Assembly (NCBI GenBank): GCA_030704615.1
Contig: CM060733.1
Span: 59,582,001-59,646,000 of the forward strand
DNA length: 64,000 nt
From: Takakia lepidozioides
Lineage: Eukaryota > Plantae > Bryophyta
Reading direction: 5' to 3'
In this document: piece by piece, positions 5,949 through 64,000 of the stretch
Numbering within the stretch: the stretch's first letter is position 1
Layout: each line of letters begins with the position of its first letter
The notes under the pieces: generated by a model
Told to the model about the DNA's origin: nothing
The model's database searches: none
What the model saw: only the letters and a program-made list of their open reading frames with translations
Translations under genes and position numbers: made by a program

Positions 5949-6125
5949 TGTCGTGTGCATACATATCGCTACACAACTACATCGCTGTCCAAAACCATAC
6001 AACACATGTGCACACCCCACACTAGTATACCACTAGTCCACCACTAGTCCAACCACTAGGCTACAACTAGTCAGTCACTAGGCTGCCACTATGCTGCCCA
6101 CTATGGCAGTCACTAGTCCACACAA
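5949..6125. repeat. terminal repeat segment A (copy 1, outer)
   Basis: Near-identical to 6444-6643, 45977-46165 and 63567-63752. Confidence 0.95.
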
Positions 6126-6643
6126 TGATAAAGAATAGGAATACAAACACGAGTTCACAAATCTGAAGCATAAACTTATGCATATATAACCTCATCACTC
6201 AAATACAAGTCAAGCCAAGTGCACCCCACGCCATGGGGAATCCACACTACGGCGCCATAGCTAGGCGCGGTGAGGCTCAACTCGAGAAAGATGAGCCTCC
6301 CGCACTTGCCGTGAAGATAACCACTCCAGGGCCTAAATCTGCCTTGACCCCTGGATTGACACTTGGGCCAATCCCAAATGTCAATATGTAAAAACTAGCT
6401 ATTTCCTAGCTAGTTTCACACTAGTGGCAAATAACTTGACAGCTGTCGTGCGCATACATATCGCTACACAACTACATCGCTGTCCAAAACCACACAACAC
6501 ATGTGCACACCACACACTAGTATACCACTAGTCCACCACTAGTCCAGCCACTAGTCCAGCCACTAGTCCACTACTAGGCTACAACTAGTCAGTCACTAGG
6601 CTGCCACTATGCTGCCCACTATGGCAGTCACTAGTCCACACAA
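6126..6643 (-). repeat. intact LTR unit B-gc-A (B 6126-6441, GC 6442-6443, A 6444-6643)
   Basis: TGAT...CACA boundaries. B matches 30612-30928 with about 4 substitutions and 1 indel. Central palindrome GACAGCTGTC at 6438-6447. Polypurine tract directly adjacent. Confidence 0.9.
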
Positions 6644-6654
6644 TCGCCTCCCTA
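6644..6654 (-). promoter_or_regulatory. putative polypurine tract
   Basis: Minus strand AGGGAGGCGA immediately precedes TTGTGTGG, the LTR start. Copy 2 has AGGGGGGCGA at 46166-46175. Confidence 0.6.
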
Positions 6655-6902
6655 GCTGGTGCTTAGGTCCCTCTAAGTCCAGGTAGCCACAAGATGTGAT
6701 AGTGACCATAGCCTCACTAAGTCCTCCACCACTATCCCTACTACACTCAAACTCGATAGATCAAGAGGCCGGGTGCAAGAGTTGCCCCATCGTTAGTCGC
6801 CGTCTTGCAACCTGTGAACTTGAGCTTGGGATCTCATGTATTGACTCCTATGAGCTTGGCCTCCCATGTCTTATTAGCTGCCTCAAGTCATGTCCACTGC
6901 CA

Positions 6903-8200
6903 CTATCCCAAGCAGTGTGGACACAACCAATCTCCGTCAGGAACCTTCTCAAGAGGTGGTGTCAAGCATCCCATATGCCAACCCCTTGAGCATCGATCAC
7001 ACACCATCATGGTGGCTGCCCCTTTGGCAGACCCACAGAGCATGCACCTCAAACCTGCAGGTACCACTGCCAAGTTTGGGTCAACTCTGCCATCGACATT
7101 GGGAAGGTGACATGGCGCACAATTACGCACATGGTCCTTCCAAGTCATGCCATCCCGACCCTCCAAGATCAGGACCCCTGAGGGCAACACCTCTCGAACC
7201 CTCAGAATAACACGCCCTGCAGTAACATCCAGAGTCGTAGGAGCAGTCTGCTGCAAATAAACATAGTCACCAGGGCTAAACCTCCACCCACGTATAGTGG
7301 CATACCTCAACGTATCACGGTGCTGTGCAATGGCAAGGTTCTCAAAAGCCATGGGCATGACTTTCTTGAACAACTGCACGCTAATCACATGCACGTACCC
7401 ACACGTCCGGATCGTCAAGGTTAAGGACTTGAGCAGTGTCCCTACGAATGGCTGCAGGCAAATCCGGCTCTCGGCCAAAGAGAAGGAAATATGGTGAGAA
7501 GGAGGCAAGTGATGCTTGTTTGTTGAACCTGTAGCCCATGGCTAACCAAGGAACCTGAAGATCCCAATCTCCTAGGTGTCCCTTCTGTAAGCCATACTTG
7601 CGCAAACCCCTCTTCACCGTCTGAACAACTCTCTCTGCTAAGCCATCGGCCTCAGGATGATCCCGAGAAGTGGTGCGGTGGTCTATCAAGGCTTTATCAC
7701 ACAAAGCTTGAAACTCCCCCAAAAACTCTCTCCCTTGGTCCGTGAGTACCTCAGCTGGAGAACCAAATTGGCTAAGCACACGATCCAAGAATGCATACGC
7801 AGCCCCCTCACTAGCCTTGTCAGGCAATGAAACCAACTCAATCCACTTGGAGAAGTGCTCCACCATCACCAACACATATCTGTGGTGGCGCATAGTCAGT
7901 GACAACGGTCCTGCGAAGTCAAGACTCCACCTGTAGCCCAATCCCATGATTGGTAAAGGATGCAACTATGGTGTAGGGGCGTTGAATGAAGCACGCACCC
8001 TGTCACACACCATGCACCTAGCCACGAACTGTTGCACCTCTGTATGCATACCACGCCACCAATACTGCCCTGCAGTAAACTGTGAGTACGTCGCACTCCA
8101 AAATGCCCCAACTCCTCATGGGAATGCCGCACTAACCGTGCACGCTGTGTGGGGTAGGCACAATCCTCACCCGACATCTCCCCAACTCGAAGTAGGTGGT
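6903..8200 (-). pseudogene. pol: DDE integrase with N-terminal HHCC zinc motif and C-terminal PHD finger (frameshifted)
   Basis: HEELGH..CMVC; WSLDFAGP, VLTDQGREF, HPEADGLAER (D-D-E); PHD CMLC..VCDRCSRGWHMGCLTPPLEKVPDGDWLCPHC at 6903-7050. Confidence 0.92.
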
Positions 8201-8479
8201 ATCCCCTCCCACTTGAACCTCTTGGCTCGTTGCAGGATCCGATCCCTCTCCCTGGCAGTCACAATGGCTGCCGTGTCTCCTGTGCGGAGGTAGTCCAACA
8301 CAGCCGAATCCTCATGTATATCTCTGGCACCACCTAGCTCATCACTAGCCTCAGGGTCCTCAGACACTCCGTCTACAGTCATCCCTGTTGTAGGTCCAAT
8401 CTGACCTCCCGATGCCAAGATACACAAAAATGCAGATGCGTGCCATCCCGCACCATCTCCTCGTCCGTCTCACCATGCC

Positions 8480-9846
8480 ACCGAGCTCCAGTGTCATCCT
8501 GCTGGCTCATGCATGGATTGCGACTCAATCCATCCGCATCCCGATTGACCAAACCCGGTCGATGCACAACCTGAAAGTCATACTCCTGGAGTATAAGTGC
8601 CCACCGTGCAAGCTTCCCCGTAAGCTTGTCTGACTCCATCAACCACTTGAGTGGCTGGTGATCCGTGACAAGGGTGAAAAATTGCCGTATAGATAGCACC
8701 TGAAGTGTGCCACGGCCCACACTGCAGCTAAGCACTCTCCCTCATATGAGCTGTACTTAGCCTCTGCAGCGTTGTTCGAGCGGCTAGCGTAAGCCACTAC
8801 GAACTCTCTTCCCTCATCATCCACCTGTGTGAGCACCGCTCCAAGCCCAGCATGCTCCAATCCGTATGCAGCTGAAAGGGACGCCCCCTGATAGGTCGTC
8901 TCAAGATAGGCGCCGAGGTCAACCTCGCCTTGAGCTCTTGAAAAGCTCGTTCCTCTTCCTCCTGGTCCACCTTGGTCTCTTGGTTAGAGCCTTTGCAATG
9001 GTACTATCCCTTGACAAACCGTCTATAATAGTTTGCCAACCCCATGAAAGCTCGAACTCGGCTCACATCCGTGGGGCGTGGAATTTGTGCAATGGCCTCT
9101 ACCTTAGTCTGCTGTACCCCCAATCCTCCAGGATATATCATGTGACCCAGATACTCAATCTGGTTGTGGAAAAACTTGCACTTCCCCGGATGCAACTTCA
9201 ATCCGTGCGCTCTCAAGCGCTCCAATACCACCTGAAGGTGTCTCTCATGCTCCTCCATCGTAACACTAAAGATGATGATGTCATCTATGTAGCACCGAGC
9301 AAAGTCCACCCCTGCTAGAATCCTATCCATGACTCTCTGAAACTCTGCAGGAGCATTCTTAAGCCCAAATGGTAAGAACCGCCACTGATATAGGCAATCC
9401 TTGCCGTGCTCATTGATCCCCCAGAATGCCGTCTTCTGCTTGTCCGCCTCCTTGATTGGCAACTGGTGATATCCGGATCGTAAATCCAAAGTGCTAAAGG
9501 CCTTAGCATGCCCGATGGCATCAAAGATCTCCTCTGGTGTTGGCATGGCATACTTATCGGACTTGGTCTGACGATTTACAGGCCGGTAATCACCGCACAT
9601 ACGTCTCTCCGTCCAATTGCCATAGACATCCTTCTTGGCTGGCATCACTGTGGCTGAAGCATACTCTCCACCAGAGAGCTCCACCAAACCTGCCTCCCAG
9701 AGATCTTGAGTCCTCATCTGAATCAAAGACCTCTCCATGTCACTGTATCTATAGGGTCTCCGAAAGATTGGCGTGTCAGTGGCCAACTCAATACGATCTC
9801 TTGACCCTTCAGTGCTCCCAAGTCCTTCAAACTGAAGGCAAAGCAA
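8480..9846 (-). pseudogene. pol: reverse transcriptase and RNase H (frameshifted)
   Basis: RMCGDYRPVN, LDLRSGYHQ, LPFGLKNAPAEFQ, YIDD, FMGLANYYRRFV; RNase H VAYASR, YSSYEGECLA, TDHQPLKWL, NRDADGLSR. Confidence 0.95.
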
Positions 9847-10289
9847 TTCCTGTAAGCCCTCAGGAACCGCCGTATACGTCGTCTCTCTCCTCCGGTGACA
9901 ATGGGTCCAATGTCAGGGCTCCCAATTGTCCTCCGTAACTGCAACCTTAAGTCCAGTGGGCTTAGAGGTAGAGGACGCGTCCAGTGGTTGCTATGTTGCA
10001 ACCTCTTGAGCAGTACTCCCCGCCTGCTCAGTCAATGACAAGGCCTCATCCTGCCCCATCATCTCATCCTTGAGGACCTCCTCAACCCGAGAAGAATCCC
10101 CAACCTCATCCATCACAGCCGCCTTGGCTGCCAACTCCCTCTGAACCTCGAGCACCTCCCACGTGTGCCATGGATGCATGCACCCCGTGGTCCTCACATG
10201 CTCGCCCCCACTCACTGCCTGTACCGTCTCGGTAGGCAGAGAGACCATTGAGGGAAGTGTATTCCGCACTCTGCGTTGCTCAGCCAGAG

Positions 10290-11245
10290 CCAAGCTGATA
10301 ATCCAGGTCAAGCAATTGAGATCCATTGCTTGCCCCAACACTTGACGACGTGATGCCTCAGAAAGAGACGACACGTGGTACCAGTGGTAAAACCCATTGC
10401 CCGCTCACGCTCGTCAGCATTAGGCTCCACTAACTACTGCTGCAACTGAGCATCCCACAGGAGGCCAGGTCCACTATCCCGGAAAGCATGCGATCCTGGG
10501 AAGCTGAGCAGTGTAGGTAATGCTGCTCGTGGTTGACCCACCTTGTTGACCACTGCCAAAGGCAAAACGGTCATCGTGTCTCACACGCTGAGACTGCCTC
10601 CCTGTGTCCAGAATGTTATCCACTGTGAGATGTGCTGGCCGCTGCACCCCATCAAATGCACGCTTGAGCAGTGCGGGTGGCATCAAGTTAGTCCACCATA
10701 GCCGTGGACGATGAGCCCGTGACCCCACTGTAGCTGCATCTAGCAACACTGCTGACCCAAGCCACGACCGGACTTGATGCACACTGGCCATCACCCTGGC
10801 CCGAGAATCGCCCATCAGTGGCACATTCTCCAAGATGTATGCTGGAGATACAGCTTGATGAAGCTGCAAGTGGCGCAAAACCCGCACCATCTCCCAAAAC
10901 AGACCCGACCTCGAGTCTCGCAATCCATTGCCATGCCCGGCTGATGAATGCCCTTGGCAGGGCCAACCTGCCACTACCAGATCAATGGAGCCAACCCGCT
11001 CCAAATCCTGCGCCCCCAGCAACGAAATGTCTGCTGGCAAGGCCTGCTGATATCCACGAATTGCAGACACCGACAACAACTCAGGGTACCGCTGCACCAA
11101 CTGAGCAACATGGCGAAGTGAAACGCGTCGTGCAGTCTCATCCCTCTCCACATACAGGTAACGCCGAACTCGTACACCTGCTGTAACACAGCAGCCAATC
11201 CGGTGCTGATCCCGCCAAACAAGTCCAGAAGACAAATGCCTTCAT
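10290..11245 (-). pseudogene. pol-embedded C5 DNA cytosine methyltransferase domain (frameshifted)
   Basis: Motif I LLDLFGGISTG, II YVERD, IV DLVVAGWPCQGHS, VI YILENV, VIII RAHRPRLWWTN, X-like RRQVLGQAMD, in canonical order (ORFs 10974-11288, 10474-11235, 9991-10374). Confidence 0.92.
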
Positions 11246-11639
11246 CCGGATACTGCCACACAATAGGTGTGGTGTCCAATGGAGACAACTGAGGTGGTCC
11301 TGGTGCAATCCCCCACTCTCCTCCTCTCCTGACGGTACAAAAGCCTCCACCCAGGCTTGTTGCACCCGTCGATCAGCATCCCGCTGCAAATCCTTGCTCG
11401 TGCCCCACAATGGAGTCTGAGCAACCATGGTAGGCAACTCCGCCATACCATACATGTCATCCTGCTCTCCCGGAGGTGGTACATCCTCTGAATGAGCATT
11501 GCCCTCAAGCAACTCTCTAGGCCAACTCACTGCCGCTGTGAATGCTGCTAGTGTCGGCATCTTGCCTCGCTGGGCAACCGCAACTCCTCCTATGAACGTC
11601 ACAGGGAGCTGCACACGCCGGCCCTCCCCTGACCATGCA

Positions 11640-12010
11640 GGCCTATAGGAAGCTGACTCCTCCCAAAAATCCAGGGTGAAGCCCATGGGGTACAACACTG
11701 CCCCACCAACCAGGACATCGTATAGACTGCGTCTGTCACAATGGCCTTGGCTCGCATCACTGAGCCATCTGTAGGGTGATCCGGCCGTAGTCTGATAGCC
11801 AACTCATGCCGTGTCATGCCCCGAGCCTGCTCCGATCCTCCCAGAGACGTCTGTATCTGGAAAGGACAAGGCTCCATATCCGCCTCCGTGAGGCCCAAGC
11901 CTGCAATAGCAGCTCTGCCAGCATCAATGGCTGAGCTCCCGAGTCCAACAAGACCCGCAGTGGCCGGTACCTCTTGCCTGCCGGTCCACTCAAACAGAAA
12001 ATGCATCCTG
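11640..12010 (-). pseudogene. pol: aspartic protease
   Basis: VLLDSG motif near 11940-11955 (reads RVLLDSGAQPLMLG in copy 2, ORF 53538-53915), followed by IQTSLGG and YDVLVGG. Confidence 0.8.
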
Positions 12011-12250
12011 GTTGTCTAACATGACAACTCCAGGTGTCACCATGGCGCGCTCAATGGCTGGCCTAGCTGGCAGCTCCATCAACCTGGCAGCTTGCCATGG
12101 CGCCGCCGTGGCAGTCTTGACCCTCAAATCCGAGGATCCCTCCGGCACTACACCTCCCACTATCTCCGCAGAAGATGAAGTAACCTCCCCACTCTCACAG
12201 AGTGTAGCTGCCAGCCTGAACACCTCAGCTGGTTTTACCCGGCGTCGCAA

Positions 12251-14153
12251 TCATGGTAGCCGAGAACAATGGAGCCTGGCACACACAGATGTGGCCGCTC
12301 CTAGCAGCACACTAGCTGCCGTAGCCTTGGCAACACTAGGTAGTGGTGCTACCCGTGTAGCTCTCCCCAATGGCATATAACCCTCCGCCTCGGTAGTCGG
12401 GCGAGAACTAGGTGCCATGGATGGCGTCGACACTGTCTCCGCCAATGTGAATGACTGAGGAAGCCTAGCCTGACGGCTTGCCTCCCCACGCTGTGGATCC
12501 AACTCCACCTCTGCACCTCGTGGCTCAGGAACTCGTGCTGCTCCTCGAGTCACGGCTGCAGCAGACTCCACCTGCACTAGTGGTAGTGCTGCTCCACACA
12601 TGAATCCCATGCCTCCCATATCTCCTCCCTCAGGAGCAGGAGGTGGACCATCCGGCCTTAGAGCCGGTACCACCTGAGCTGTAGCCATGGCAGCGAGCCT
12701 CTGCTCTAGCTGCTGAAGCCGGTTGGCCATGCCTTGGTCAACACCCTGACCTCCGCGTCCTTGGCCATGTTGAGCTTGCCCTTGGCCTGCACCTCGTGGC
12801 TGGCCACCTCGTCCTCTCTGGGCTGCTCCACCTCGCCCCCGGCCACCATTGTTCCCTTGGAACTGGCCTGGGCGCAACTCAGGATGCAAACCATAACACT
12901 GGGCCTCTCCATGCCCGTGCTTGCCACAATGCCCACACTGCAACTGTGCAGGCTGTGCATGTGCCGGCCCTTTGCCTCCCTCTGGGCAATCCTTTTTTGA
13001 CATGGGGTCCTCCACATGTCCAGCACACCACATCCGCCCGTTGTTGGCCAGCAAATGAAGGGAGAGACCCCTGCATCTGAGGTCCTCTCTGCCCTTCCCT
13101 GAGCTTCACCTGAGCCCCCTTGTTGCCTTGAGCACGTTGAGGTAGTGGTTGGCTAGGAGCACCACTACCCCGTGGTGTCTCCTTAGCAAATCCCACCATG
13201 ACCACTCGTTCCTCCACCATGTTGAGCTCTATCCGCTCTGCCAGCAAAAACACATTTGCTAAGGTGGGTTGGGCCGCTTGTAGGAGAGTTGCATCCCGCA
13301 CCCCTTCTCCTCAGCTCCTTGTCCAATATCCCATACCAGAATTGGACTGCCTGAGCTTCCGTAACCCCTTGGGTTACATTTATCAAGCGCCTCATGCGAG
13401 TGAAAGCCTCCCTCAAGCTCTCAGTCGGCTTCCGTTGGAACTCTTGCAAGCTCCGCAACTTCTCTGTCCTCACCCCTTGGTAGTTCCCTCTCAACTCTTC
13501 GAAGAACTCCACAACAGGGTTGAAGGCAGGCACGGGTGCTAGTGCTGGTGCGGTAGTGGCTTGGGTGGACGTCGTAGCTACTGTACCACCAGTCCCACTT
13601 TCCACTGCTACTTGCTGAAGCTGCCGGTGCAGCGGCAGGTGTAGCCACTGCCCTCGTGGCTCTAGTGCCCCTAGTGATGGAGACATAGTCGGGTGACCAG
13701 TACATCCTCCACTCCTCGATCTCAACCTCATGCCCCCGCCTGAACTCATGGTAATCATCCATAGGCGGCCCCTCAAGGTGCTGAAACAGCCCTTTCCATG
13801 CCATGAACGGCGTAAATAGTTGTGGATTGCGCATTTGCTGCAAATCACACCAACTATCAAACTCTTGGATAAAATCATCCAACTCGATGGTGCCCACCGC
13901 CCCAGAGTACTTTTCGTGGCCCCTTGGTAGCTCCATACATCCTCCATTGTGTCCCACAACAATGGCAAAGAAACAACTTGCACCGCCGGTATGAGTCCTC
14001 CTGATTCACAATCCGAATCAGAACCTTCCGTGAAGACACAGGAGGTGAAGGTGGCCTAAACCGCACACCTCGTCTCGTGTACCCACTAGTATCGCTAGTG
14101 CTCGAACCGGCACTATCCCCAGCAACTAGTGGCACCTCCGTGTTGACACTCAA
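12251..14153 (-). pseudogene. gag with two zinc knuckles (frameshifted)
   Basis: LDDFIQEFDSWCD, FQRKPTESLREAFTRM, CWTCGGPHVKKDC, CGHCGKHGHGEAQC, RGG-rich tract. Confidence 0.85.
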
Positions 14154-14715
14154 CCGGTCATGAACATGTCCCTAACCCCCTCTCCACAAGGTAACCGGGT
14201 AGAGAACCTGTTGCGGCTTATGGTTTGGAATACTAAGTTCCTAACATAGCCTACACCTGTACCTGCATCCACCGCAAGCACTCCTATGGTTGGCTGGTCA
14301 TCACCTCCAACCTCACCACAGGAGAAACAATGATGGTCTGGCTGGTCATCACCCCAGCCTCACCATCGACAGCATGCTCTAGGACTGGCCGGTGATCAAA
14401 TCGGACCAATCACCTATAAAAACAAGCGCCCACACAAAACTAGCATGGCGCACAGTCAAGCATGCAGGTATGGAGGGGATCCAAACACAAGAAATCAGAA
14501 CGACAACTCCCCCACACCAAAAACAACTCCACGGTGTTGCTCTTGCAATGACACCCCAGCCCAAACCCGAACTGACTCTTGCCTCCACCTACGGAAAGGT
14601 CTTGGCCTAATGAGAGGGTGGAAACTACGAAGAAGAGAAGCTAAAGCAATGCATACCCCCAGCATGCCCTCATCCCAACACTCTTCCTCTCCTCTCTCTC
14701 AACCTCACTTGCATG

Positions 14716-15420
14716 ACCATTGTTCCCTTGGAACTGGCCTGGGCGCAACTCAGGATGCAAACCATAACACTGGGCCTCTCCATGCCCGTGTTTGCCACAA
14801 TGCCCACACTGCAACTGTGTAGGCTGTGCATGTGCCGGCCCTTTGCCTCCCTCTGGGCAATCCTTTTTGACATCGGGTCCTCCACATGTCCAGCACACCA
14901 CATCCGCCCGTTGTTGGCCAGCAAATGAAGGGAGAGACCCCTGCATCTGAGGTCCTCTCTGCCCTTCCTTGAGCTTCACCTGAGCCCCCTTGTTGCCTGC
15001 ACATTGAGGTAGTGGTTGGCTAGGAGCACCACTACCCCGTGGTGTCTCCTTAGCAAATCCCACATGACCACTCGTTCCTCCACCATGTTGAGCTCTATCC
15101 TCTACCGCTCTGCCAGCAAAAACACATTTGCTAAGGTGGGTTGGGCCACTTGTAGGAGAGTTGCATCCGCACCCTTCTCCTCAACTCCTTGTCCAATATC
15201 CCATACCAGAATTGGACTGCCTGAGCTTCCGTAACCCCTTGGGTTATATTTATCAAGCGCCTCATGCGAGTGAAAGCCTCCCTCAAGCTCTCATTCGGCT
15301 TCCGTTGGAACTCTGCAAGCTCCGCAACTTCTCTGTCCTCACCCCTTGGTAGTTCCCTCTCAAACTCTTCGAAGAACTCCACAACAGGGTTGAAGGCAGG
15401 CACGGGTGCTAGTGCTGGTG
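14716..15420 (-). repeat. first part of an internal tandem duplication (repeats 12845-13550); continues at 27279-28447 after the MULE
   Basis: Junction GCATGACCAT|TGTTCCC with ACCAT microhomology at 12845-12849, 14716-14720 and 28443-28447. Confidence 0.9.
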
Positions 15421-15823
15421 GGGGGGTGCTATTCCGTGAGCCTAGAGGCGTGAGCCTGTGAGCCCAGGAAAGCGTGAGCCCAGCACAGGCTCACGCCACG
15501 TCAGCATGCAAACAGTGCCTATTTCCGCGGGATGTCACCTATTTCCGAGTGGGGTCACCTATTTCCGCGGGTTGATGTGGGGAGAATTGAGAATTGAGAA
15601 CAAAGTGGTTTGTTTGTTTTTGCAATGTACTCAAGTCTGTGAGGTTCACAAACAACAAATATATTGAAGGAACAATCCGGGCAGTCCATGCAACCCCCAT
15701 CTCCAACAATAGTTTGGAACCATGAATGTGAATTCCATGCACACATTGCAAAGAGGACAATAAGGACACACAACCATCCCATTTCAAATTTGTCCCAGAA
15801 TTAAACCAAAAGAATACTTCATA

Positions 15824-30595: not shown

Positions 30596-30611
30596 GCTGA
30601 TCTTTCTCGAG
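30596..30611 (-). promoter_or_regulatory. non-tRNA primer-binding-site position, complementary to LTR-internal 30767-30782
   Basis: Plus strand GCTGATCTTTCTCGAG abuts B and is the reverse complement (15/16) of CTCGAGAAAGATGAGC inside B. No TGG..tRNA match is present. Same arrangement at 63225-63240. Confidence 0.65.
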
Positions 30612-44554: not shown

Positions 44555-44639
44555 TCAGTAAACCGATTTACACTGAAGGTCTGCGATAGCAAGGTATCAA
44601 CGTACGCGAGGAAGGAAGATGGCTTCCTCTAAAGCGAGC

Positions 44640-51999: not shown

Positions 52000-52965
52000 C
52001 CATAGCCAAGCTGATAATCCAGGTCAAGCAATTGAGATCCATTGCTTGCCCCAACACTCGACGACGTGTGCCTCAGAAAGAGAGACGACATCGCCGTGGT
52101 ACCAGTGGTAAAACCCATTGCCCGCTCACGCTCGTCAGCATTAGGCTCTACTAACTGCTACAACTGAGCATCCCACAGGAGGCCAGGTCCACTATCCCGG
52201 AAAGCATGCAATCTTGGGCAGCTGAGCAGTGTAGGTAATGTTGCTCGTGGTTGACCCACCTTGTTGACCACTGCCAAAGGCGAATGGTCATCGTGTCTCA
52301 CACGCTGAGAATGCCTCCATGTGTCCAGAATGTTATCCACTGTGAGATGTGCTGGCCGCTGCACCCAATCAAATGCACGCTTGAGCATGCGGGTGGCCAT
52401 CAAGTTAGTCACCATAGCCATGGACGATGAGCCCGTGACCCCATTGTAGCTGCATCTAGCAAGACTACTGACCCAAGCCACGACCGGACTTGATGCACAC
52501 TGGCCATCACCTGGCCCGAGAATCGCCCATCAGTGGCACATTCTCCAAGATAAGATATGTATGCGGAGAGAGAAGCTTGATGAAGCTGCAAGTGGCGCAA
52601 AACCCGCACCATCTCCCAAAACAGATCCCGACCTCGAGTCTCGCAATCCATTGCCATGCCCGGCTGATGAATGCCCTTGGCAGGGCCAACCTGCCACTAC
52701 CAGATCAATGGAGCCAACCCGCTCCAAATCCTGCGCCCCCAACAACGAAATGTCTGCTGGCAAGGCCTGCTGATATCCACGAATTGCAGACACCGACAAC
52801 AACTCAGGGTACGCTGCACCAACTGAGCAACATGGCGAAGTGAAACGCGTCGTGCAGTCTCATCCCTCTCCACATACAGGTAACGCCGAACTCGTACACC
52901 TGCCTGTAACACAGCAGCCAATCCGGTGCTGATCCCGCCAAACAAGTCCAGAAGACAAATGCCTT
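52000..52965 (-). pseudogene. C5 cytosine methyltransferase domain of copy 2
   Basis: CLLDLFGGISTGLAAVLQAG, DLVVAGWPCQGHS, YLILENV, LGQAMD. Confidence 0.92.
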
Positions 52966-53379
52966 CATCCGGATACTGCCACACAATAGGTGTGGTGTCC
53001 AATGGAGACAACTGAGGTGGTCCTGTGCAATCCCCACTCTCCTCCTCTCCTGACGGTACAAAAGCCTCCACCCAGGCTTGTTGCACCCGTCGATCAGCAT
53101 CCCGCTGCAAATCCTTGCTCGTGCCCCACAATGGAGTCTGAGCAACCATGGTAGGCAACTCCGCCATACATACATGTCATCCTGCTCTCCCCGGAGGTGG
53201 TACATCCTCTGAATGAGCGTTGCCCTCAAGCAACTCTCTAGGCCAACTCACTGCCGCTGTGAATGCTGCTAGTGTCGGCATCTTGCCTCGCTGGGCAACC
53301 GCAACTCCTCCTATGAACGTCACAGGGAGCTGCACACGCCGGCCCTCCCCTGACTGCCATGCAGGCCTATAGGAAGCTG

Positions 53380-55866
53380 ACTCCTCCAAAAATCCAGGGT
53401 GAAGCCCATGGGGTACAACACTGCCCCACCAACCAGGACATCGTATGAGACCGCGTCTGTCACAATGGCCTTGGCTCGCATCACTGAGCCATCTGTAGGG
53501 TGATCCGGCCGTAGTCTGATAGCCAACTCACGCCGTGTCATGCCCCGAGCCTGCTCCGATCCTCCCAGAGACGTCTGTATCTGGAAAGACAAGGCTCCAT
53601 ATCCGCCTCCGTGAGGCCCAAGCCTGCAATAGCAGCTCTGCCCAGCATCAATGGCTGAGCTCCCGAGTCCAACAAGACCCGCAGTGGCCGGTACCTCTTG
53701 CCTGCCGGTCCACTCAAACAGAAAATGCCATCCTGGTTGTCTAACATGACAACTCCAGGTGTCACCATGGCGCGCTCAATGGCTGGCCTAGCTGGCAGCT
53801 CCATCAACCTGGCAGCTGCAGCTTGCCATGGCGCCGCCGTGGCAGTCTTGACCCTCAAATCCGAGGATCCCTCCGGCACTACACCTCCCACTATCTCCGC
53901 TCCTCCCACTCTCACAGAGTGTAGCTGCCAGCCTGAACACCTCAGCTGGTCTTACCCCCGGCGTCGCAATCATGGTAGCCGAGAACAATGGAGCCTGGCA
54001 CACAGATGTGGCCGCTCCTAGCAGCACACTAGCTGCCGTAGCCTTGGCAACACTAGGTAGTGGTGCTACCCGTGTAGCTCTCCCCAATGGCATAGTAACC
54101 TCCGCCTCGGTAACAGTCGGGCGAGAACTAGGTGCCATGGATGGCGTCGACACTGTCTCCGCCAATGTGAATGACTGAGGAAGCCTAGCCTGACGGCTTG
54201 CCTCCCCACGCTGTGGATCCAACTCACCTCTGCACCTCGTGGCTCAGGAACTCGTGCTGCTCCTCGAGTCACGGCTGCAGCAGACTCCACCTGCACTAGT
54301 GGTAGTGCTGCTCCACACATGAATCCCATGCCTCCCATATCTCCTCCCTCAGGAGCAGGAGGTGGACCATCCGGCCTTAGAGCCGGTACCACCTGAGCTG
54401 TAGCCATGGCAGCGAGCCTCTGCTCTAGCTGCTGAAGCCGGTTGGCCATGCCTTGGTCAACACCCTGACCTCCGCGTCCTTGGCCATGTTGAGCTTGCCC
54501 TTGGCCTGCACCTCGTGGCTGGCCACCTCGTCCTCTCTGGGCTGCTCCACCTCGCCCCCGGCCACCATTGTTCCCTTGGAACTGGCCTGGGCGCAACTCA
54601 GGATGCAAACCATAACACTGGGCCTCTCCATGCCCGTGCTTGCCACAATGCCCACACTGCAACTGTGCAGGCTGTGCATGTGCCGGCCCTTTGCCTCCCT
54701 CTGGGCAATCCTTCTTGACATGGGGTCCCCACATGTCCAGCACACCACATCCGCCCGTTGTTGGCCAGCAAATGAAGGGAGAGACCCCTGCATCTGAGGT
54801 CCTCTCTGCCCTTCCCTGAGCTTCACCTGAGCCCCCTTGTTGCCTTGAGCACGTTGAGGTAGTGGTTGGCTAGGAGCACCACTACCCCGTGGTGTCTCCT
54901 TAGCAAATCCCACCATGACCACTCGTTCCTCCACCATGTTGAGCTCTATCCGCTCTGCCAGCAAAAACACATTTGCTAAGGTGGGTTGGGCCGCTTGTAG
55001 GAGAGTTGCATCCCGCACCCTTCTCCTCAGCTCCTTGTCCAATATCCCATACCAGAATTGGACTGCCTGAGCTTCCGTAACCCCTTGGGTTACATTTATC
55101 AAGCGCCTCATGCGAGTGAAAGCCTCCCTCAAGCTCTCGTCGGCTTCCGTTGGAACTCTTGCAAGCTCCGCAACTTCTCTGTCCTCACCCCTTGGTAGTT
55201 CCCTCTCAACTCTTCGAAGAACTCCACAACAGGGTTGAAGGCAGGCACGGGTGCTAGTGCTGGTGCGGTAGTGGCTTGGGTGGACGTCGTAGCTACTGTA
55301 CCACCAGTCCCACTAGTCCACTGCTGCTTGCTGAAGCTGCCGGTGCAGCGGCAGGTGTAGCCACTGCCCTCGTGGCTCTAGTGCCCCTAGTGATGGAGAC
55401 ATAGTCGGGTGACCAGTACATCCTCCACTCCTCGATCTCAACCTCATGCCCCCGCCTGAACTCATGGTAATCATCCATAGGCGGCCCCTCAAGGTGCTGA
55501 AACAGCCCTTCCATGCCATGAAAGGCGTAAATAGTTGTGGATTGCGCATTTGCTGCAAATCACACCAACTATCAAACTCTTGGATAAAATCATCCAACTC
55601 GATGGTGCCCCACCCCAGAGTACCTTCGTGGCCCTTGGTAGCTCCATACATCTCCTCCATTGTGTCCCACAACAATGGCAAAGAAACAACTTGCACCGCC
55701 GGTATGAGTCCTCCTGATTCACAATCCGAATCAGAACCTTCCGTAGAAGACACAGGAGGTGAAGGTGGCCTAAACCGCACACCTCGTCTCGTGTACCCAC
55801 TAGTATCGCTAGTGCTCGAACCGGCACTGTCCCAGCAACTAGTGGCACCTCCGTGTTGACACTCAA
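53380..55866 (-). pseudogene. gag and protease of copy 2
   Basis: RVLLDSGAQPLMLG; zinc knuckles; ORFs 54066-54743, 54425-55132 and 55313-55780. Confidence 0.88.
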
Positions 55867-56574
55867 CCGGTCATGAACATGTCCCTAACCCCCTCCACAA
55901 GGTAACCGGGTAGAAACCTGTTGCGGCTTATGGTTTGGAAATACTAAGTTCCTAACATAGCCTACACCTGTACCTGCATCCACCGCAAGCACTCCTATGG
56001 TTGGCTGGTCATCACCTCCAACCCCCACAGGAGAAACATAATGATGGTCTGGCTGGTCATCACCCCAGCCTCACCATCGACAGCATGCTCTAGGACTGGC
56101 CGGTGATCAAATCCGGACCAATCACCTATAAAAACAAGCGCCCACACAAAACTAGCATGGCGCACAGTCAAGCATGCAGGTATGGAGGGGATCCAAACAC
56201 AAGAAATCAGAACGACAACTCCCCCACACCAAAAACAACTCCACGGTGTTGCTCTGCAAGGACACCCCAGCCCAAACCCGGACTGACTCTTGCCTCCACC
56301 TACGGAAAGGTCTTGGCCTAATGAGAGGGTGGAAAACTACGAGGAAGAGAAGCTAAAGCAATGCCTAACCCCAGCATGCCCTCATCCCAACACTCTTCCT
56401 CTCCTCTCTTCCTCACTTGCATGACCATGGGAATATCATGAAGATACTCCTCAAACCGCCCTCCACGAGCTTCAAAATTCGGCCTTCAAGACCACATGCC
56501 AGTCCTTAGGCAGTCCACCAGTGCCTCCACGAGTCAGCACAGGCCGTCCACAGGTCAACACGGGCCACCACAGA

Positions 56575-57685
56575 CCAGCACAGGCCACACAGCTCACTGG
56601 TCACAGCCGTCACAGCCCCACACAGGCCACAGCCTCACAACCCTACACAAGTCACAGGTCACAGCCCCACATCACAGCCCCAAAGGCCACATGTCACAGC
56701 CCGTCACAACCCAAAGGCCACAGGCACAGCCTGTCACAGCCTACGTCACGTCACAGCCCCAAAGGCCACAAGCCCATCACAGCCCCACACACAGCCTCAC
56801 AGCCCGTCACAGCCCACAGGCCACAGGCACAGCCTGTCAAGCCCCTCAACAGTCACAGCCCCACAGGCCACAGGCACAGCCTGTCACCCTCACAGCCCGT
56901 CACAGCTCGCCACAGGTCACAGACAGGCCACAGGGCCCTGTCACAGCCCTCACAGCCATCACAGCCCAGGCCACTGGGCACACAGCCCCTCACAGCCCGT
57001 CACAGCCCACAGGCCACAGGGCACAGGCTGTCACAGCCCCTCACAGCCCTCACAGCCCCACAGGCCACTGGGCACAGCCTGTCACAGCCCCTCACAGCCC
57101 CTCACAGCCCCACAGGCCACTGGGCACAGCCTGACACAAGCCGTCACAGCCCGTCACAGCCCCAAGGCCACAGCACCATAGCCCCTCACAGCCCGTCACA
57201 GCCCACACATAGGCCACATGGCACAGCTTGTCATAGCCCTCACAACCCGTCACAGCTCGCCACAGCCCCACAGGCCACATGGCGCCGCCTGTCACAGCCC
57301 CTCACAGCCGTCATAGCTCGCCACAACCTGTACAGCCCGTCACAGCCCCACAGGCCATAGGGCACAGCCTGTCACAGCCCCTCACAGGCCCACAGGCTGG
57401 GCACAGCCTGTCAAGCCCTCACAACCCGTCACAGCCCCCATGCCAGGCACAGCCTGTCAAGCCCTCACAGCCCGTCACAGCCCCACAGGCCACTGGGCAC
57501 AGCCGCCACAGCCCCCAAGCCCACAGCCTGTCACAGCCCTCACAGTCGTCACAGCCCCACAGGCTACTGGGCACAGCCTGTCACAGCCCGTCACAGCCCC
57601 ACAGGCCATTGGGCACAGCCTGACACAGCCCGCCACAGCCCCACAAGCCACATGGCACAGCCTGTCACAGCCCCACAGGCCACTC
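56575..57685. repeat. CACAGCC minisatellite in leader of copy 2, ~1.1 kb
   Basis: Same unit family as 28555-29125. Confidence 0.92.
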
Positions 57686-59277
57686 ATGACAGTTTAGCCA
57701 TTTCTCCAAGGGGTTTAGCCACGCCAAACTAGGGTTTGTGTCTCTTGGACTCTAGGCTTCTTTGCACCGAGCTATGGCGGCTGTGAAGAAATCAGCAAGG
57801 TATTCTTGCTCTTTCGGCTCCCACACACCACCAATAGTAGCCCTAAGCCATGAGGAAGATGGTTGCCACAAACCAAACTTCTTTCTCACTTAGACTCCCC
57901 AAACACGCCACTAAACTCAATGGCAACCAACCAAGCCTTGCTGGTTTCCAGCCCTTGTGAGCACTCATTCAAGCGTTTCCCTTGGCCATAGCATCTGTCT
58001 TAGAGCCTATTCCAGCCCCCTAAACCTGCCACTTCAAAGAGCCATGCTCTATCTAGGCTTGAGGTTGAAACCCCAACTCAGAACACGCTCTACAAGTGTC
58101 GGACTGTCACATAAGAGCATATCAGCCCCTTACCTTCTCTTCTAGTTCTCGAAAGCTTGAAACCTTCAACAAGCTGAAAGCATGCTCCATACATGCATTG
58201 CTCTCACATAAGGGAAGTCAGCCCTTCCCTTTCCCTTGCTTGCCCTCCAAGCTTGAAGATGGAAGCTTCAATGAGCTGAATACATGCTCCACACATGCAA
58301 CCTCTTCACACAAGAGGTATCAGCCCCCTATCTTGGCTCCTTAGCTCCTTGATGCTCTCTAAGACAAGACTAAGCACTCTACAACCTTTGCCAAGCTCCT
58401 GAAACCCTAAGGCTTATATTTCCAGCCACAAGACACTTCTCTTGTGGTGCAAGAGCTATTCTTCCAAGCTCTGAAACCCTAGGTGCACATTCCATGGCCT
58501 TGCCGCACCTCTTAGCTCCTGTTCCAGCCCTGCTCTTGCCATGACAAGAGCTGTCGCGCACCTCACTTCGGTAAGCTCCCCCCTCAAGTCATAGTTACTC
58601 GCTTTGATGCGCGCGCCTGACTCCCAACCTGGCCGCCGGGCCAACTTGGAGCTTCGGCTGCTCACCGGGGCATAACGGTCCCCCTTGTTCTCCCAAAGAA
58701 CCCTCCACCGATTTGGAACCAGCGGGAATTCCCTTTGGTAGTGGCAGTCCGGAACAGCTCCCCACTCTTTGGTCGCTTTCCGGCTCGCTCGCTTACTCAC
58801 TAGTTTTTGGTCACCAACGGGCTTGCACCGTTCTCGGGGTTACTACTCCCTATATATACTTCTGTAGCTGTCCGCGGGGGTTTCACAACTAGCCATGCCA
58901 TTTTATGGCGAACCACCACGAAAACCCTCGACTCCCGGTGATGAGTCGCGGTGAGTCTTGGCCCACTCACCACGGTCCCTATGGACCGTGATGAGTCCCA
59001 AGACTCCCCACGACTCCCACCACGAGGTCTCCGCCCCCATGGTGAGTCCTATGCCACCCCCACTAAGTCCCGCTAAGCTACCACCACCCCTTGTGGAGCC
59101 ACCCCCACCGCAACCCGGTGTGCGGGGCTCCACCTAATGAGCGCCTCCGCCTCCTTGCGTGCCTTGGGCACTCAAGGGTGCTTCAGCCCCCCATACCTAT
59201 CGCTGCCGCTGCCCCCACCACAGGGGCAACCCCTCATGTGTCCCGACCCCCCCCTGCCCTCAAGGCAAAGGGCCGAC

Positions 59278-61900
59278 GCATCTGTATGAATCTCAAATGG
59301 ACGATCGAACTCCGGGATTTTCAAGACTGGAGCTTCCGCCATCCGTGCTTCAATTCAGCAAAAGCTTGGCCACAAAATGTGTGTTCCATACCTAGACTTT
59401 GGATTTACACAGAAGGTCCGACAGCGGCCCCGCGATCTTGGCGAAATTTCTCACATACTTCCGGTAATAGGAGGCGAGTCCTAGGAAGGATCGCACTCCC
59501 GGGACCGAAGTCGGAGGCTCCCAGTCCAAGATCGCCCTCACCTTTCTGTCATCCATTTTGATCCCATCCTGTGTAATCACATGCCCCAGGAACTCCACTT
59601 TTGTGACCCGAATTTGCACTTTGAAGCTTTGGCATACAGCTTCCCTTCTCGCAATTTTGGAAACACCCTTTTTAGGTGCTCCAGGTGTTCTTCCTTTGTT
59701 TTCGAGTACACCAAGATGTCGTCGATGTACACGATCACAAAGTCATCCAACCACTCCTGGAAAAGGCTGTTCATCAGCGTGCTAAATGTCGCTGGTGCAT
59801 TGGTGAGCCCAAAAGGCATCACCAAGAACTCATATGAACCATACCTTGTCCTGCAGCGGTCTTCTCCTCATCTCCTTCCGCCACCCGAATTTGATGATAG
59901 CCGGAGTGCAAGTCGATCCGGCTGAAATACTTCGCTCCTGCCAACCGATCGAAGAGGTTGTCGATCCTTGGCAAAGGGTACGGTTTTTGATAGTCACCTT
60001 ATTCAGAGCCCTGTAATCGACACAATCCGCAGCGTCCCATCCTTCTTGTCTGCGAATAGCACCGGGGCTCCGTAAGGTGACTTACTCGGCCGGATGTACC
60101 CTTTGACATTAGATCCTTGAGCTGAGTCTTCAGCTCGACCAACTCCCTGTGGCTCAACCGGTAGGTGCCTTGGCAGGCGGTTCCATTCCCGGTATCACCT
60201 CAATCTTGTGGTCAACTCTTCGCGGTGGCAAGCCGCTTGGTAAATCCTCTGGCATCACATCCTGGTATTTCTCCAAAATCCCCTTGATCCAATCTGGGCT
60301 CAGCTCCCCATCGCCTTCTCCCTTCACTTCTCTAATGTAAAGCAAAAACTGGGGCTGTGTGCCTCCTCCACGGCCCACTCCCTTGCTGACAGAAGGTTTA
60401 TTCGCCCTCCACGGATTTGGGTGTTTTCGACACTCGTAAGACCTCGCTACCATTCCCACAAGGCAGCGTGACTACTCTCTTACGGCCATCTATTACCGCT
60501 CCGGATTTGTTCAAAAATGTCATCCCCAAAATGAGATCTACTCCATCGATCTCGCAGATGGTGAAGTTCTCACGTCCCTCCCAACTCCCCAGTTGAAGAT
60601 GAACATCAAACGCCAACCTTGTCGTCAACTCTGGTTCTCCTTTGGCAGAACGCACCTCAATAGAGGCCCCCACGTCACTTGTCGGGAGTCCCAACTTTCG
60701 CGCTGCCGCCGGCGTCATGAAGGAGTGCGACGCTCCTGTGTCACCTACAACGACACGTTAGTTCCGGATATTATCCCATCCATGAAATAACTGACTCCCT
60801 TTATGCAGGGCGCCAGTTTCCTGATACAACTCACAAGAATAGTTGCCTACCTTGCAAGTCCTGGCGACCACCGCTTCCACCAAGCGACTGATGGTATCTT
60901 TCGACAGCTCCGTGGTTGCCCGAGTCATGTTCAATTGTCGAGGTTTCGTGCACTTCTTGGCCATGTGCCCGGGCTCCCCGCAATTGAAACACACTCCATC
61001 AAAGGTCGCCTTATGTCCGCCATAAGCCGCTCCACCCGCTTTTCCTTTCGAAGCACCGGGTGTCGCCTTGACGTGTGAAGGCCCCCCTTCGATTTCCACG
61101 TGCCATTGTCGCCGCGTGGCCTATCCCACTTCTTTTCCGGTCGGAAGGAGTCACCTTCCCGCCGGGTCTTCTTGTGGTTCAGCTCCGTACGGCCTTGTCT
61201 CTCACCCCTAGGGACATCCGAGAAACATTCAGCCCTCTCAATTGCCTCGTTCAAAGTCTTGGGTGGCTTCTCCTCCAACTTCCGCCTGGCCCATGGGGCC
61301 AATCCTGCCACAAAGTTGAAGACCATTTCTGGTTCTTCCATGTCCGTGACTTCGAGCAATAGCACATTGAAAGCCTAGACATACCCCCGAATGTCATCTG
61401 TTTGCTTCAAATTCCTCATCTTGTCCCGGGCAAGCCAGGACGCGTTGAGGGGCACAAACTGTCTCTTCATCAATTCCTTGAACCCACTCCAGTTCAAGGT
61501 TTCTGGGCTTGGACCTCGGTCGTGAAGGCGTTTCTGCCACCATTGTTGAGCATAGCCCCTCAAATAGGTGGGAGCCACTTCCACCCGATCCTCGTCACTC
61601 AACTTGGCCGCCCGGAAGTACTGCTCTAGCTCCAGGAGCCAGGTGTTGAGTGCCTTCCGATTTCGGACGCCTCGAAAGGTGCCGGGTTCCTTAGGCTTCA
61701 CCTTAAACTTTGCCTTAGTGGAAGTGGCATTAGCCGCCTTCAACACGTCTTTCAACGTCCCGCCAAACTGCGCCAACAACCCTTCCCAAAAGGCTGCCGG
61801 CATGGGAGGCATCTCTTGGTTTGTCGGAGCTCTCAAGGATTCCTCGGGCTCCGACTCCTTGGATTCCTCCGCTCTTGAGCGGCCTCGTTTTCGGAAACAT
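59278..61900 (-). pseudogene. gag - protease - RT, ending at the start of RNase H (FEIHTDAS)
   Basis: YLRGYAQQWW gag; CFNCGEPGHMAKKC knuckle; GDTGASHSF protease; [12 protein letters not shown] and [12 protein letters not shown]. Confidence 0.92.
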
Positions 61901-62047
61901 GCATTGCTTCCTCAAACGGCCGCCTCGGTGACACGTCGCCCCCATCGGGCTCACCAGGATCATCATCTTTTGGGCCGCCGCTTTCGCTTCGGCTTGCCCG
62001 ACCCCATGATGAGGCCAATCCAAGGACGATCGCGTACTGAACTCTAA

Positions 62048-62059
62048 GCTCTGATACCA
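62048..62059 (-). promoter_or_regulatory. primer-binding site for initiator tRNA-Met
   Basis: Minus strand TGGTATCAGAGC, 2 nt after the 5' LTR. Confidence 0.92.
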
Positions 62060-63240
62060 AGTGTCGCGCACCTCACTTCGGTAAGCTCCCCTCAAGTCAT
62101 AGTTACTCGCTTTGATGCGCGCGCCTGACTCCCAACCTGGCCGCCGGGCCAACTTGGAGCTTCGGCTGCTCACCGGGGCATAACGGTCCCCTTTGTTCTC
62201 CCAAGAAACCTCCACCGATTTGGAACCAGCAGGAATTCCCTTTGGTAGTGGCAATCCGGAACAGCTCCCCACTCTTTGGTCGCTTTCCGGCTCGCTCGCT
62301 TACTCACTAGTTTTTGGTCACCAACGGGCTTGCACCGTTCTCGGGTTACTACTCCCTATATATACTTCTGTAGCTGTCCGCGGGGTTTCACAACCAACCA
62401 TGCCATTTTATGGCGAACCACCACGAAAACCCTCGACTCCCGGTGATGAGTCGCGGTGAGTCTTGGCCCACTCACCACGGCCCCTATAGACCGTGATGAG
62501 TCCCAAGACTCCCCACGACTCCCACCACGAGGTCTCCGCCCCCATGGTGAGTCCTATGCCACCCCCACTAAGTCCCGCTAAGCTACCACCACCCCTTGTG
62601 GAGCCACCCCACCGCAACCCGGTGTGCGGGGCTCCACCTAGTGAGCGCCTCCGCCTCCTTGAGTGCTTTGGGCACTCAAGGGTGCTTCAGCCCCCCATAC
62701 CTATCGCTGCCGCTGCCCCCACCACAGGGGCAACCCCATGTGTCCCGACCCCCCTGCCCTCAAGGCAAAGGGCCGCGACAAGAGCCCTCTCAATGTTGAA
62801 GCTCGAGATTGAAACCCAATCTCACCATACTCCACAAAGTGCATTGATTTGCCCCAAGCCAAATCAGCCCTTTCGCTTGGTCTTGCAATCCTTCACACAA
62901 TGAAAGCTCGCATTCCCAAGTCCAGTTCTCAGCTTTGCCACCAAAGCCACTATAACCTGCTCTTGACTATCATCTTCCCAAGTGTGCTCATGCATGTACA
63001 TAATCTGAACCATCAAGGTGCTCTGGAATTACCTGCAGCATGGTGCTTTCATCTCTGAAGCTGAAGATCGAATGCCAAGGTCTACCACCTCGTAACCCAC
63101 ATCGCCTCCGCTTTTAACAACCAAGAGCTCACGGTGCTCCTTGCATAACAACTTGGTTCTCTCATTCTCAAGCAAAAAACCACAAGTGCTACAAACTAAC
63201 TCGTATCTGGACTCACAGATACGAGCTGATCTTTCTCGAG

Positions 63241-64000
63241 TGATAAAGAAGAAGAATACAAGCACAAGCTCATGCGAGCTCACAAAGCTGAAGCATAAAT
63301 TCATGCATATATAACCTCATCACTCAAATACAAGTCAAGCCAAGTGCACCCCACGCCATGGGAATCCACATACGGCGCCATAGCTAGGCGCGTGAGAGGC
63401 TCAACTCGAGAAAGATGAGCCTCCCGCACTTGCCGTGAAGATACCACTCCAGGGCCTAAATCTGTCTTGACCCCTGGATTGACACTTGGGCCAATCCCAA
63501 ATGTAATATGTAAAAGCTAGCTATTTCCTAGCTAGTTTCACACTAGTGGTAAAATAACTTGACAGCTGTCGTGCGCATACATATCGCTACACAACTGCAT
63601 CGCTGTCCAAAAACCACACAACACATGTGCACCACCACAAACTAGTATACCACTAGTCACACTAGGAAACCACTAGTCAACCACTAGGCTACAACTGTCA
63701 GTCACTAGGCTGCCACTATGATGCCACACTATGGCAGTCACTAGTCACACAATGATAAAGAAGAAGAATACAAGCACAAGCTCATGCGAGCTCACAAAGC
63801 TGAAGCAAATCATGCATATATAAACCTCATCACTCAAATACAAGTCAACCAAGTGCACCCACGCCATGGGGAATCCACACTACGGCGCCATAGCTAGGCG
63901 CGGTGAGGCTCAACTCGAGAAAGATGAGCCCCCGCAGTTTCCGTGAAGATAACCCACTCCAGGGCCTAAATCTGCCTTGACCCCTGGATTGACACTTGGG
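63241..64000. repeat. terminal repeats of copy 2: B-gc-A-B(partial)
   Basis: Palindrome GACAGCTGTC at 63561-63570. Both B copies share the diagnostic insertion AAGCTCATGCGAGCTCACAAAG that is absent from the copy 1 B segments. Confidence 0.93.

Follow-up and report, generated by a model that had tools for sequence, protein, structure and literature searches.

Permuted Repeat Blocks and a Candidate Integration Site Within U3 in a Methyltransferase-Carrying Ty3/gypsy Lineage of Takakia lepidozioides

Introduction

Two copies of a gypsy-type retroelement with long terminal repeats (LTRs) are located in a 64,000-bp stretch of the genome of Takakia lepidozioides (Bryophyta; assembly GCA_030704615.1, contig CM060733.1, positions 59,582,001 to 59,646,000), which in its full length is referred to here as the window. 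The lineage to which both copies belong encodes gag, a protease region, a Dnmt-type C5 cytosine DNA methyltransferase, reverse transcriptase (RT), ribonuclease H (RNase H), a DDE integrase, and a PHD finger. This coding region is accompanied by repeats of two blocks, A and B, the order of which is described here together with the related elements of mosses, a liverwort, and Closterium and the integration mechanism that the arrangement suggests. A split-repeat layout on a DDE gypsy element is already in print in one sentence of 2018 (PMC5890265): the legend of Fig. 4c reports DIRS-like repeats on KnitGypsy-Dnmt3 of Klebsormidium nitens (de Mendoza et al., 2018). That report is the sole prior mention of the layout in the literature searched, in which no paper giving junctions, duplications, attachment (att) site, or mechanism was found, and a mechanism based on such an att site appears to be undescribed there.

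Structure of the Two Copies

Throughout, A and B denote the blocks on the plus strand, A′ and B′ the same blocks in the orientation of the element, the genes of which lie on the minus strand, int the internal region, and j the joint between A and B. Copy 1 (5949-30928) was resolved by self-BLAST and direct reading into A-B-gc-A-[pol-gag]-B on the plus strand, corresponding to B′-int-A′-B′-A′ in gene orientation, and its termini are TGTC at the start and GACA at the end (Table 1). The A blocks of this copy agree at 97.7% by substitutions, apart from a single 23-nt indel within a short repeat, and for the B blocks the identity is 98.7%; the near-identity within both pairs fits their having arisen in one event. 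Copy 1 is damaged internally, the 11.8-kb insert occupying 15421-27265 and including a 115-bp tandem array (20153-21973); the 11 open reading frames (ORFs) scanned in this insert gave no Pfam match.

Copy 2, which extends from 45977 to the end of the window, reads A-[pol-gag]-B-gc-A-B on the plus strand by the same two approaches. It may be either the mirror arrangement of copy 1 or a piece of a longer array, the far end and the duplication lying beyond base 64000. At its left side, GC at 45975-45976 precedes TGTC, and the boundary is thus either 45975 or 45977; the dinucleotide may be there by chance (1 in 16). The segment 49086-56428 is collinear with 7394-14720 of copy 1 at 96.6% identity, and the interior is interrupted at 46697-49085 by an inverted piece of another LTR element and holds a nested, internally deleted LTR element (58552-62775) with 724-bp LTRs. 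Furthermore, the stretch 63100-64000 shows 6-9 gap events per block of approximately 190-320 bp relative to other copies, many of them single-base, at a density far above that found elsewhere, and could represent a local loss of sequence quality or an older segment.

Table 1. Features of the two copies and their coordinates in the window.
Feature	Position	Strand	Remark
Target-site duplication ATGA, left copy	5945-5948		direct reading; equals 30929-30932
Copy 1 terminal A block (A′2)	5949-6125	minus	element end ...GACA (TGTC on plus)
Single extra base of A/B joint, copy 1	6125
Copy 1 3′-side B block (B′2)	6126-6441	minus
12-nt segment ATCTTTCTCGAG in B′2, complementary to primer site	6280-6291	plus
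Mid-LTR palindrome GACA-GC-TGTC, proposed integrase attachment site	6438-6447		halves recur at every host junction
Copy 1 inner A block (A′1), U3 start	6444-6643	minus
Polypurine tract, element strand AGCTAGGGAGGCGA, directly adjoining A′1	6644-6657	minus
PHD finger, C-terminal end of pol	6906-7541	minus	Pfam PF00628, E = 4.5e-11
Integrase DDE core rve	7384-7965	minus	PF00665, E = 2.9e-14
Integrase_H2C2 zinc domain	7899-8258	minus	PF17921, E = 7e-4
RT_RNaseH	8382-8983	minus	Pfam, E = 1e-17
Reverse transcriptase RVT_1	9007-9912	minus	Pfam, E = 6.9e-34
C5 cytosine DNA methyltransferase, inside pol, upstream of RT	10477-11241	minus	PF00145, E = 2e-13
gag, weak match	13186-14055	minus	Retrotrans_gag, E = 0.002, under curated cut-off
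Secondary damage inside copy 1	14716-27265		1.87-kb tandem duplication of gag region and 11.8-kb unclassified insert
Primer-binding position, element strand CTCGAGAAAGAT, directly after B′1	30600-30611	minus
Copy 1 5′-side B block (B′1)	30612-30928	minus	element strand begins TGTC
Target-site duplication ATGA, right copy	30929-30932		direct reading
Copy 2 A block, polypurine-side, abuts non-element DNA	45977-46165	minus
Copy 2 polypurine tract	46166-46179
Copy 2 internal region	46166-63240	minus
Copy 2 primer site	63229-63240
Copy 2 B block, primer-side	63241-63564	minus
Copy 2 palindrome GACA-GC-TGTC	63561-63570
Copy 2 extra A	63567-63752	minus
Copy 2 extra B, cut by window end	63753-64000	minus

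Coding Content

Pfam searches were performed with stop-free pieces of the coding strand of copy 1, the broken genes being searched piece by piece as they stand. Both copies in the window are disrupted by frameshifts and secondary insertions, and in copy 1 frameshifts break the integrase region 7384-8258 (minus strand) and the methyltransferase motif GWPCQG is intact. The order of RT, RNase H, and DDE (rve) integrase in pol is that of Ty3/gypsy elements (Metaviridae), and related polyproteins have architectures such as CCHC-DNMT-RT-RH-H2C2-rve. A tyrosine recombinase domain (Phage_integrase, PF00589) was matched in none of 20 coding-strand pieces of copy 1 at E≤0.01 and, at E≤1e-4, in none of four related gypsy-DNMT polyproteins; a fifth protein scanned (P0123) shows a DNMT domain only, and the record of P0272 lists no tyrosine recombinase domain either.

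The pieces of copy 1 gave no Pfam match to a chromodomain, and the C-terminus is formed instead by the PHD finger. A PHD finger is also present in the moss metagenome locus L001 (12650-12991) and in the proteins P0130 and P0163; as in the window, it lies C-terminal to the integrase in the place of the chromodomain of chromoviruses. This position suggests targeting guided by histone tails.

Delimitation of the LTR

The A blocks adjoin a polypurine tract and the B blocks a putative primer site. The polypurine tract is conserved between the window and the homologous moss elements, in which AGCTAGGGGGGCGAG adjoins A′. On the other side, no primer site of the transfer RNA (tRNA) type follows B′; the site found there is complementary to a part of B′ instead. 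In copy 1, the 12 nt at 30600-30611 are complementary to 30767-30778 in B′1, which was matched in 0 of 500 shuffles, and across lineages the 10-16 nt after B′ pair with a segment approximately 150-170 nt inside B′ (0-3 matches per 500 shuffles). The two partners co-vary in three lineages, being CTCGAGAAAGAT and ATCTTTCTCGAG in the window, ACTCAAAGAACTATGT and its complement in mosses, and ACTTAGAGAACT and its complement in the liverwort. Furthermore, in the RNA reaching from the B′ segment to the primer site, the 5′ end is predicted to fold onto the primer site at -72.4 kcal/mol (z = -5.2).

Priming thus appears, from these pairings, to follow the Tf1-type self-priming design, with the end of U5 (the unique 5′ part of the LTR) placed at the end of B′. 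Because the polypurine tract abuts A′ and the self-primer site abuts B′, the LTR defined by reverse transcription is read as A′-gc-B′ (B-gc-A on the plus strand), with the palindrome inside U3, the unique 3′ part. The palindrome was also considered as the boundary between U3 and R, the terminal repeat of the transcript; this assignment was dropped since the self-primer sets the probable start of transcription at approximately 150 nt into B′.

The joint between A and B is CACA-A-TGAT on the plus strand in both copies of the window. In element orientation, it consists of the U5 end, one base, and the U3 start, i.e., CA-T-TG in the window and TTTTCA-[A/G]-TTGTGG in mosses. The joint differs among copies, and that of the moss copy L015 carries a 15-nt insertion starting with the sequence of the primer site; retained primer-site sequence is a known class of aberrant 2-LTR circle junction in retroviruses. 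A variable joint with an inserted primer site, next to a constant gc palindrome, implies that j is an end joint made anew in each cycle and A′-gc-B′ the LTR that is copied. A sequence-only reading had preceded this analysis. Its block coordinates and the ATGA duplication of copy 1 were all reproduced by self-BLAST and direct reading, and the Pfam profile agrees with the DDE-integrase gypsy element lacking a tyrosine recombinase that it had described. Likewise, its assignment of B-gc-A as the LTR is borne out by the conserved polypurine tract beside A and the co-varying self-priming site beside B, and its view of the A/B joint as an LTR-LTR end joint gained support from the primer-binding-site insertion of the one moss copy.

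Related Elements and Their Host Junctions

Relatives were found via an RT piece and a methyltransferase piece of the element, and 97 loci were fetched. The RT piece matched peat-moss metagenomes and the liverwort Calypogeia fissa at 57-92% identity, and the methyltransferase piece matched metagenome gypsy-DNMT polyproteins together with named DNMT-bearing proteins of Closterium and Scenedesmus, including P0134 of Scenedesmus sp. PABB004, a protein of 3225 aa annotated as 'pol'. The elements of Closterium, the nearest comparison among charophytes, have their domains in the same order as the window element, to which they are 46% (RT) and 37% (DNMT) identical. Copies of these, located at 9441-17082 of L094 (strain NIES-68) and 14616-15781 of L095 (strain NIES-54), likewise show split repeats and the palindrome GACA-GC-TGTC, together with a duplication of 4 bp.

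Two forms of integrated element recur. The long form, B′-primer site-gag-pol-polypurine tract-A′-gc-B′-j-A′, is complete in three moss metagenome loci, L001 (duplication TCAT), L014 (AAGG), and L034 (AATC), in L096 of C. fissa (CTTT), and in L094 of Closterium NIES-68 (AGGG); these five and copy 1 have the layout A-coding-B-A-B. It is partly visible in L013, L015, L047, L050, L054/55, L072/73, L074/75, and L095, which gives 13 canonical long copies in relatives and 14 counting copy 1. The short form, B′-int-A′, lacks any terminal repeat and is the commonest form in the moss contigs, with 14 distinct loci. Perfect duplications flank it in L020 (TGTT), L030 (TACA), L037 (ATTA), L057 (TGTG), and L068 (TACA), whereas those of L005 and L032 match at three of four bases only. 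A further short form, L003, the duplication of which is CAAA when the start is aligned with that of L096, is present in the chromosome-level assembly of C. fissa, and the short form is therefore not an artefact of short reads.

Altogether, 12 of the 14 complete elements have a perfect 4-bp duplication; for at least 9 in 12, the probability by chance is approximately 5e-20. The ends are always TGTC...GACA or point mutants thereof, so that TG...CA termini and a duplication within the range of 4-6 bp were found, and none of the 24 visible 5′ ends carries a complete LTR, so that the two complete LTRs of a Ty3/gypsy element were not. Among the remaining loci, the Logan contig L092 (90% nucleotide-identical) ends exactly at the boundary between the polypurine tract and A and is uninformative on termini, and the lake-metagenome DNMT-gypsy lineages L088-L091 show no clear split repeats within their contigs; L005/L006, L062, and L064/65 were set aside as not classifiable, being over-rearranged or of low complexity.

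The window and the main moss family share the internal boundary GACA-GC-TGTC with C. fissa and with the two species of Closterium, and in L094 it is lengthened to the 16-bp palindrome TGCGACAGCTGTCGCA. One moss family has AACA-AT-TGTT at this place. The rest of the LTR is not alignable between lineages and the palindrome has been kept, which argues that the palindrome in the middle of the LTR is under selection. Integrated copies are bounded by the two halves of this palindrome, lack its central GC, and are flanked by a 4-bp duplication.

The half-site at the right end is always preceded by CpGs, i.e., CGCACGACA in mosses and the liverwort (L001, L014, and L096) and GCGCACGACA in the window (6430-6460), and the half-site at the left end is without CpGs. 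Methylation of the att site by the CG methyltransferase of the element itself is conceivable.

Position of the Extra Block

The extra block of the long form is confined to one side. In the main moss family, it is present at 8 of 22 distinct 3′ ends vs. 0 of 19 distinct 5′ ends (Fisher p = 0.004; binomial 2e-4), and with all families, C. fissa, Closterium, and copy 1 of the window taken together, the 14 canonical long copies stand beside 0 of 24 5′ ends with an extra block. Copy 2 is the only mirror case and is incomplete in the window. Possible causes of the one-sidedness are a faster collapse of the mirror form by recombination, its two B′ repeats exceeding the A′ repeats in length by a factor of 3-5, a one-sided read-around from the U5 end to the U3 start during plus-strand synthesis, and a difference between the two LTRs in the substrate.

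The sequence-only reading had placed the host junctions at the palindrome halves, with 4-bp duplications and the GC lost, and this was observed in the window and in 11 further complete relatives. Of the three classes that it predicted, ABA..B and A..B recur in relatives, the latter without any repeat and commonest in the moss contigs, but A..BAB is represented only by the incomplete copy 2. Its proposal that a 2-LTR circle is opened at random in either LTR is not supported, since the extra block of relatives is found on the 3′ side only.

Proposed Mechanism of Integration

The preferred reading, to which a probability of approximately 0.6 is assigned, is that both copies belong to an old streptophyte Ty3/gypsy lineage that integrates at the palindrome inside U3 by its DDE integrase and thereby gives permuted products. 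Briefly, ordinary reverse transcription would produce the LTR A′-gc-B′ between the polypurine tract and the Tf1-like self-primer. The integrase would then skip the tips of the LTR and use the two halves of the CA-GC-TG palindrome in U3, approximately 150 nt upstream of the inferred start of transcription. A nick after each CA would yield CA-3′OH ends with a 2-nt GC 5′ overhang, the geometry of normally processed ends, and strand transfer would generate the 4-bp duplication with loss of the GC. The integrated copies would consequently be permuted relative to the LTR in two forms, B′-int-A′ and B′-int-A′gcB′-j-A′. The long form would require complementary DNA (cDNA) with U5 joined to U3, i.e., a 2-LTR circle, an end-to-end joined molecule, or a read-around molecule, whereas the short form could originate from a 1-LTR circle or from linear cDNA cut in each of its two LTRs. 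A circular intermediate is plausible; the anatomy, the domains, the duplications, the conserved site, and the variable joint are direct observations, and cleavage of the palindrome by the integrase and the topology of the substrate are inferred from the structure of the copies. A chemical precedent is provided by the integrases of foamy virus and human immunodeficiency virus type 1 (HIV-1), which cleave palindromic LTR-LTR junctions (PMC1180852, PMC1905944).

Several points weigh against this reading. Its evidence consists entirely of integrated copies, and the copies in the window are all degenerate, as are most relatives. The extra block is solely on the 3′ side in relatives, whereas a circle cut at one of two identical sites predicts otherwise. 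Furthermore, short forms could arise after integration through A′-A′ recombination in long forms, and their frequency is therefore no proof of direct integration, nor is the ratio of the two forms a direct read-out. In addition, the likeness to the Klebsormidium element is based on its published description rather than on its sequence.

Among the alternatives, the cDNA could always be a 2-LTR (or 1-LTR) circle, the integrase opening the palindrome of either LTR at random and giving ABA..B, A..BAB, and A..B. Copies 1 and 2 and the short forms represent these three classes, and the joint resembles a circle junction, including the variant with the primer-site insertion. The long classes should then be about equally frequent, but 14 canonical copies contrast with 0 of 24 5′ ends bearing a mirror block, and the sole mirror copy runs off the window and could belong to a longer array. 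Although this explanation could be rescued if the mirror form were lost more rapidly, through recombination of its two long B′ blocks, we consider it unlikely. Alternatively, no closed circle would be needed if, at the end of plus-strand synthesis, the polymerase switched from the U5 end to the U3 start and produced a linear LTR-int-LTR-j-A′... molecule. Only the right end would gain a second GACA, and the integrase would pair TGTC of the 5′ LTR with either of the two GACA half-sites, which explains the one-sided extension, the mixture of short and long forms, and a joint with copied primer sequence. This scheme is nevertheless purely inferential, needs nicking far from a DNA end and trimming of the tails by repair, and yields no copy 2 unless copy 2 is a longer concatemer; it is regarded as distinctly improbable.

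The assignment of the LTR could also be reversed, A-B (TGTC...GACA) being the true LTR with normal integration and B-gc-A the circle junction. A-B has perfect TG...CA inverted ends, and GACA-GC-TGTC resembles two LTR tips with one extra base each. However, in every copy the internal region adjoins A at its polypurine end and B at its primer end, and no copy is flanked by A-B at both ends. The gc junction does not vary, and the A/B joint does and can include primer sequence, which is the opposite of what is predicted. Both the polypurine tract and the self-primer keep their places across lineages, which contradicts this assignment and makes it very improbable. Of similarly slight probability is an origin by misassembly, or by nesting of ordinary LTR copies or unequal recombination among them, in a region that is full of nested elements and the last approximately 900 bases of which are rich in 1-base indels. 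Against it, copy 1 is bracketed by a perfect duplication, and the layout recurs in four independent kinds of assembly, among them short-read metagenome contigs, the chromosome-level C. fissa assembly, and two Closterium assemblies, each time with a duplication of its own, for which reason this origin was rejected. An ordinary LTR element rearranged after insertion was likewise rejected, since ordinary copies were not encountered and it is the permuted unit that the duplications enclose. Finally, split direct repeats of the A1-int-B1-A2-B2 type are the hallmark of DIRS/Ngaro/PAT-type elements (PMC5890265), which would imply integration by a tyrosine recombinase. This is contradicted by the failure to find a recombinase domain in the scanned pieces of copy 1 and the related polyproteins and by the presence of a DDE integrase and of 4-bp target duplications, and it is hardly credible. 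Tyrosine recombinases are not known to make 4-bp target duplications.

Neighboring Genes and Other Repeats

Families of approximately 300-bp repeats at 2036-5128 and 33867-39290 (plus strand) correspond to the P-L-S triplets of PLS-class pentatricopeptide-repeat (PPR) genes, which mark the host as a land plant with PPR genes of the RNA-editing type. The second gene terminates in E and E+ motifs (38655-39290, plus strand), the best database match of its E-motif ORF being only 55% identical. When the flanks of copy 1 were joined with one ATGA removed, no continuous ORF was obtained, and the adjoining PPR genes thus give no empty-site support. The retrotransposon family with 724-bp LTRs that is nested in copy 2 is also represented by the inverted fragment at 46697-49085 within that copy and by a lone LTR fragment at 44296-44550, 1.4 kb outside copy 2, and contains stop-free pieces that resemble, as judged by eye, gag, protease, and RT fragments.

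Comparison With Known Systems

KnitGypsy-Dnmt3 is the published element of this kind: like the window element, it has a gypsy-type pol with an internal Dnmt-type C5 methyltransferase and is arranged as A-coding-B-A-B. The paper concerns K. nitens only and is without junction sequences, duplications, att site, priming mode, or short form (PMC5890265), whereas the present lineage has been followed into a land plant, mosses, a liverwort, and Closterium. The long form, in gene orientation, has exactly the A1-int-B1-A2-B2 layout of DIRS, Ngaro, and PAT, from which the window element differs by its DDE integrase, its TG...CA ends, its 4-bp duplications, and the absence of any detected recombinase.

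With regard to the integrase, the foamy-virus and HIV-1 enzymes are similar in that a palindrome of the CA-NN-TG style is cut in duplex DNA to give integration-competent ends (PMC1180852, PMC1905944). In those viruses, however, the palindrome is formed where the two LTR tips meet, and a normal provirus results, whereas here the palindrome lies inside the LTR and the product is permuted. With regard to priming, Tf1/sushi elements (the Tcn1 clade in plants, PMC6317226) likewise lack a tRNA primer site and have a 5′ transcript segment complementary to the sequence after U5. Unlike them, the window element terminates in a PHD finger rather than a chromodomain, and the likeness is drawn from the priming design. 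The plant-wide survey of LTR elements mentions neither the methyltransferase nor the PHD finger (PMC6317226).

Significance and Perspectives

With the present comparison, DNMT-carrying gypsy elements, previously reported from one charophyte, are also documented in mosses, a liverwort, Closterium, and the land plant of the window. Circular or end-joined cDNA is usually regarded as a dead end. If the integrase does act on the internal palindrome, these elements would offer a natural case of joined-end cDNA as a productive substrate, a matter long debated in retrovirology. In the insertion sequences IS3, IS911, and IS30, a DDE enzyme acts on abutted ends separated by a spacer of 2-3 bp, with a circular intermediate; these are DNA transposons without reverse transcription, whereas the window element would be a retroelement of a eukaryote that operates in the manner of an IS911-type junction circle. 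The mechanism, if true, would also account for the convergence of a DDE element on a split-repeat layout thought to be diagnostic of tyrosine-recombinase elements, and it would define a class of gypsy insertions that have no terminal repeats and are invisible to LTR-based finders. In its broadest form, which we advance tentatively and at somewhat less than even odds, a gypsy lineage spanning zygnematophytes to land plants may have moved its att site from the LTR tips to a palindrome in U3, such that joined-end cDNA, in the form of 1-LTR and 2-LTR circles or of read-around molecules, would be productive and most insertions would be without LTRs.

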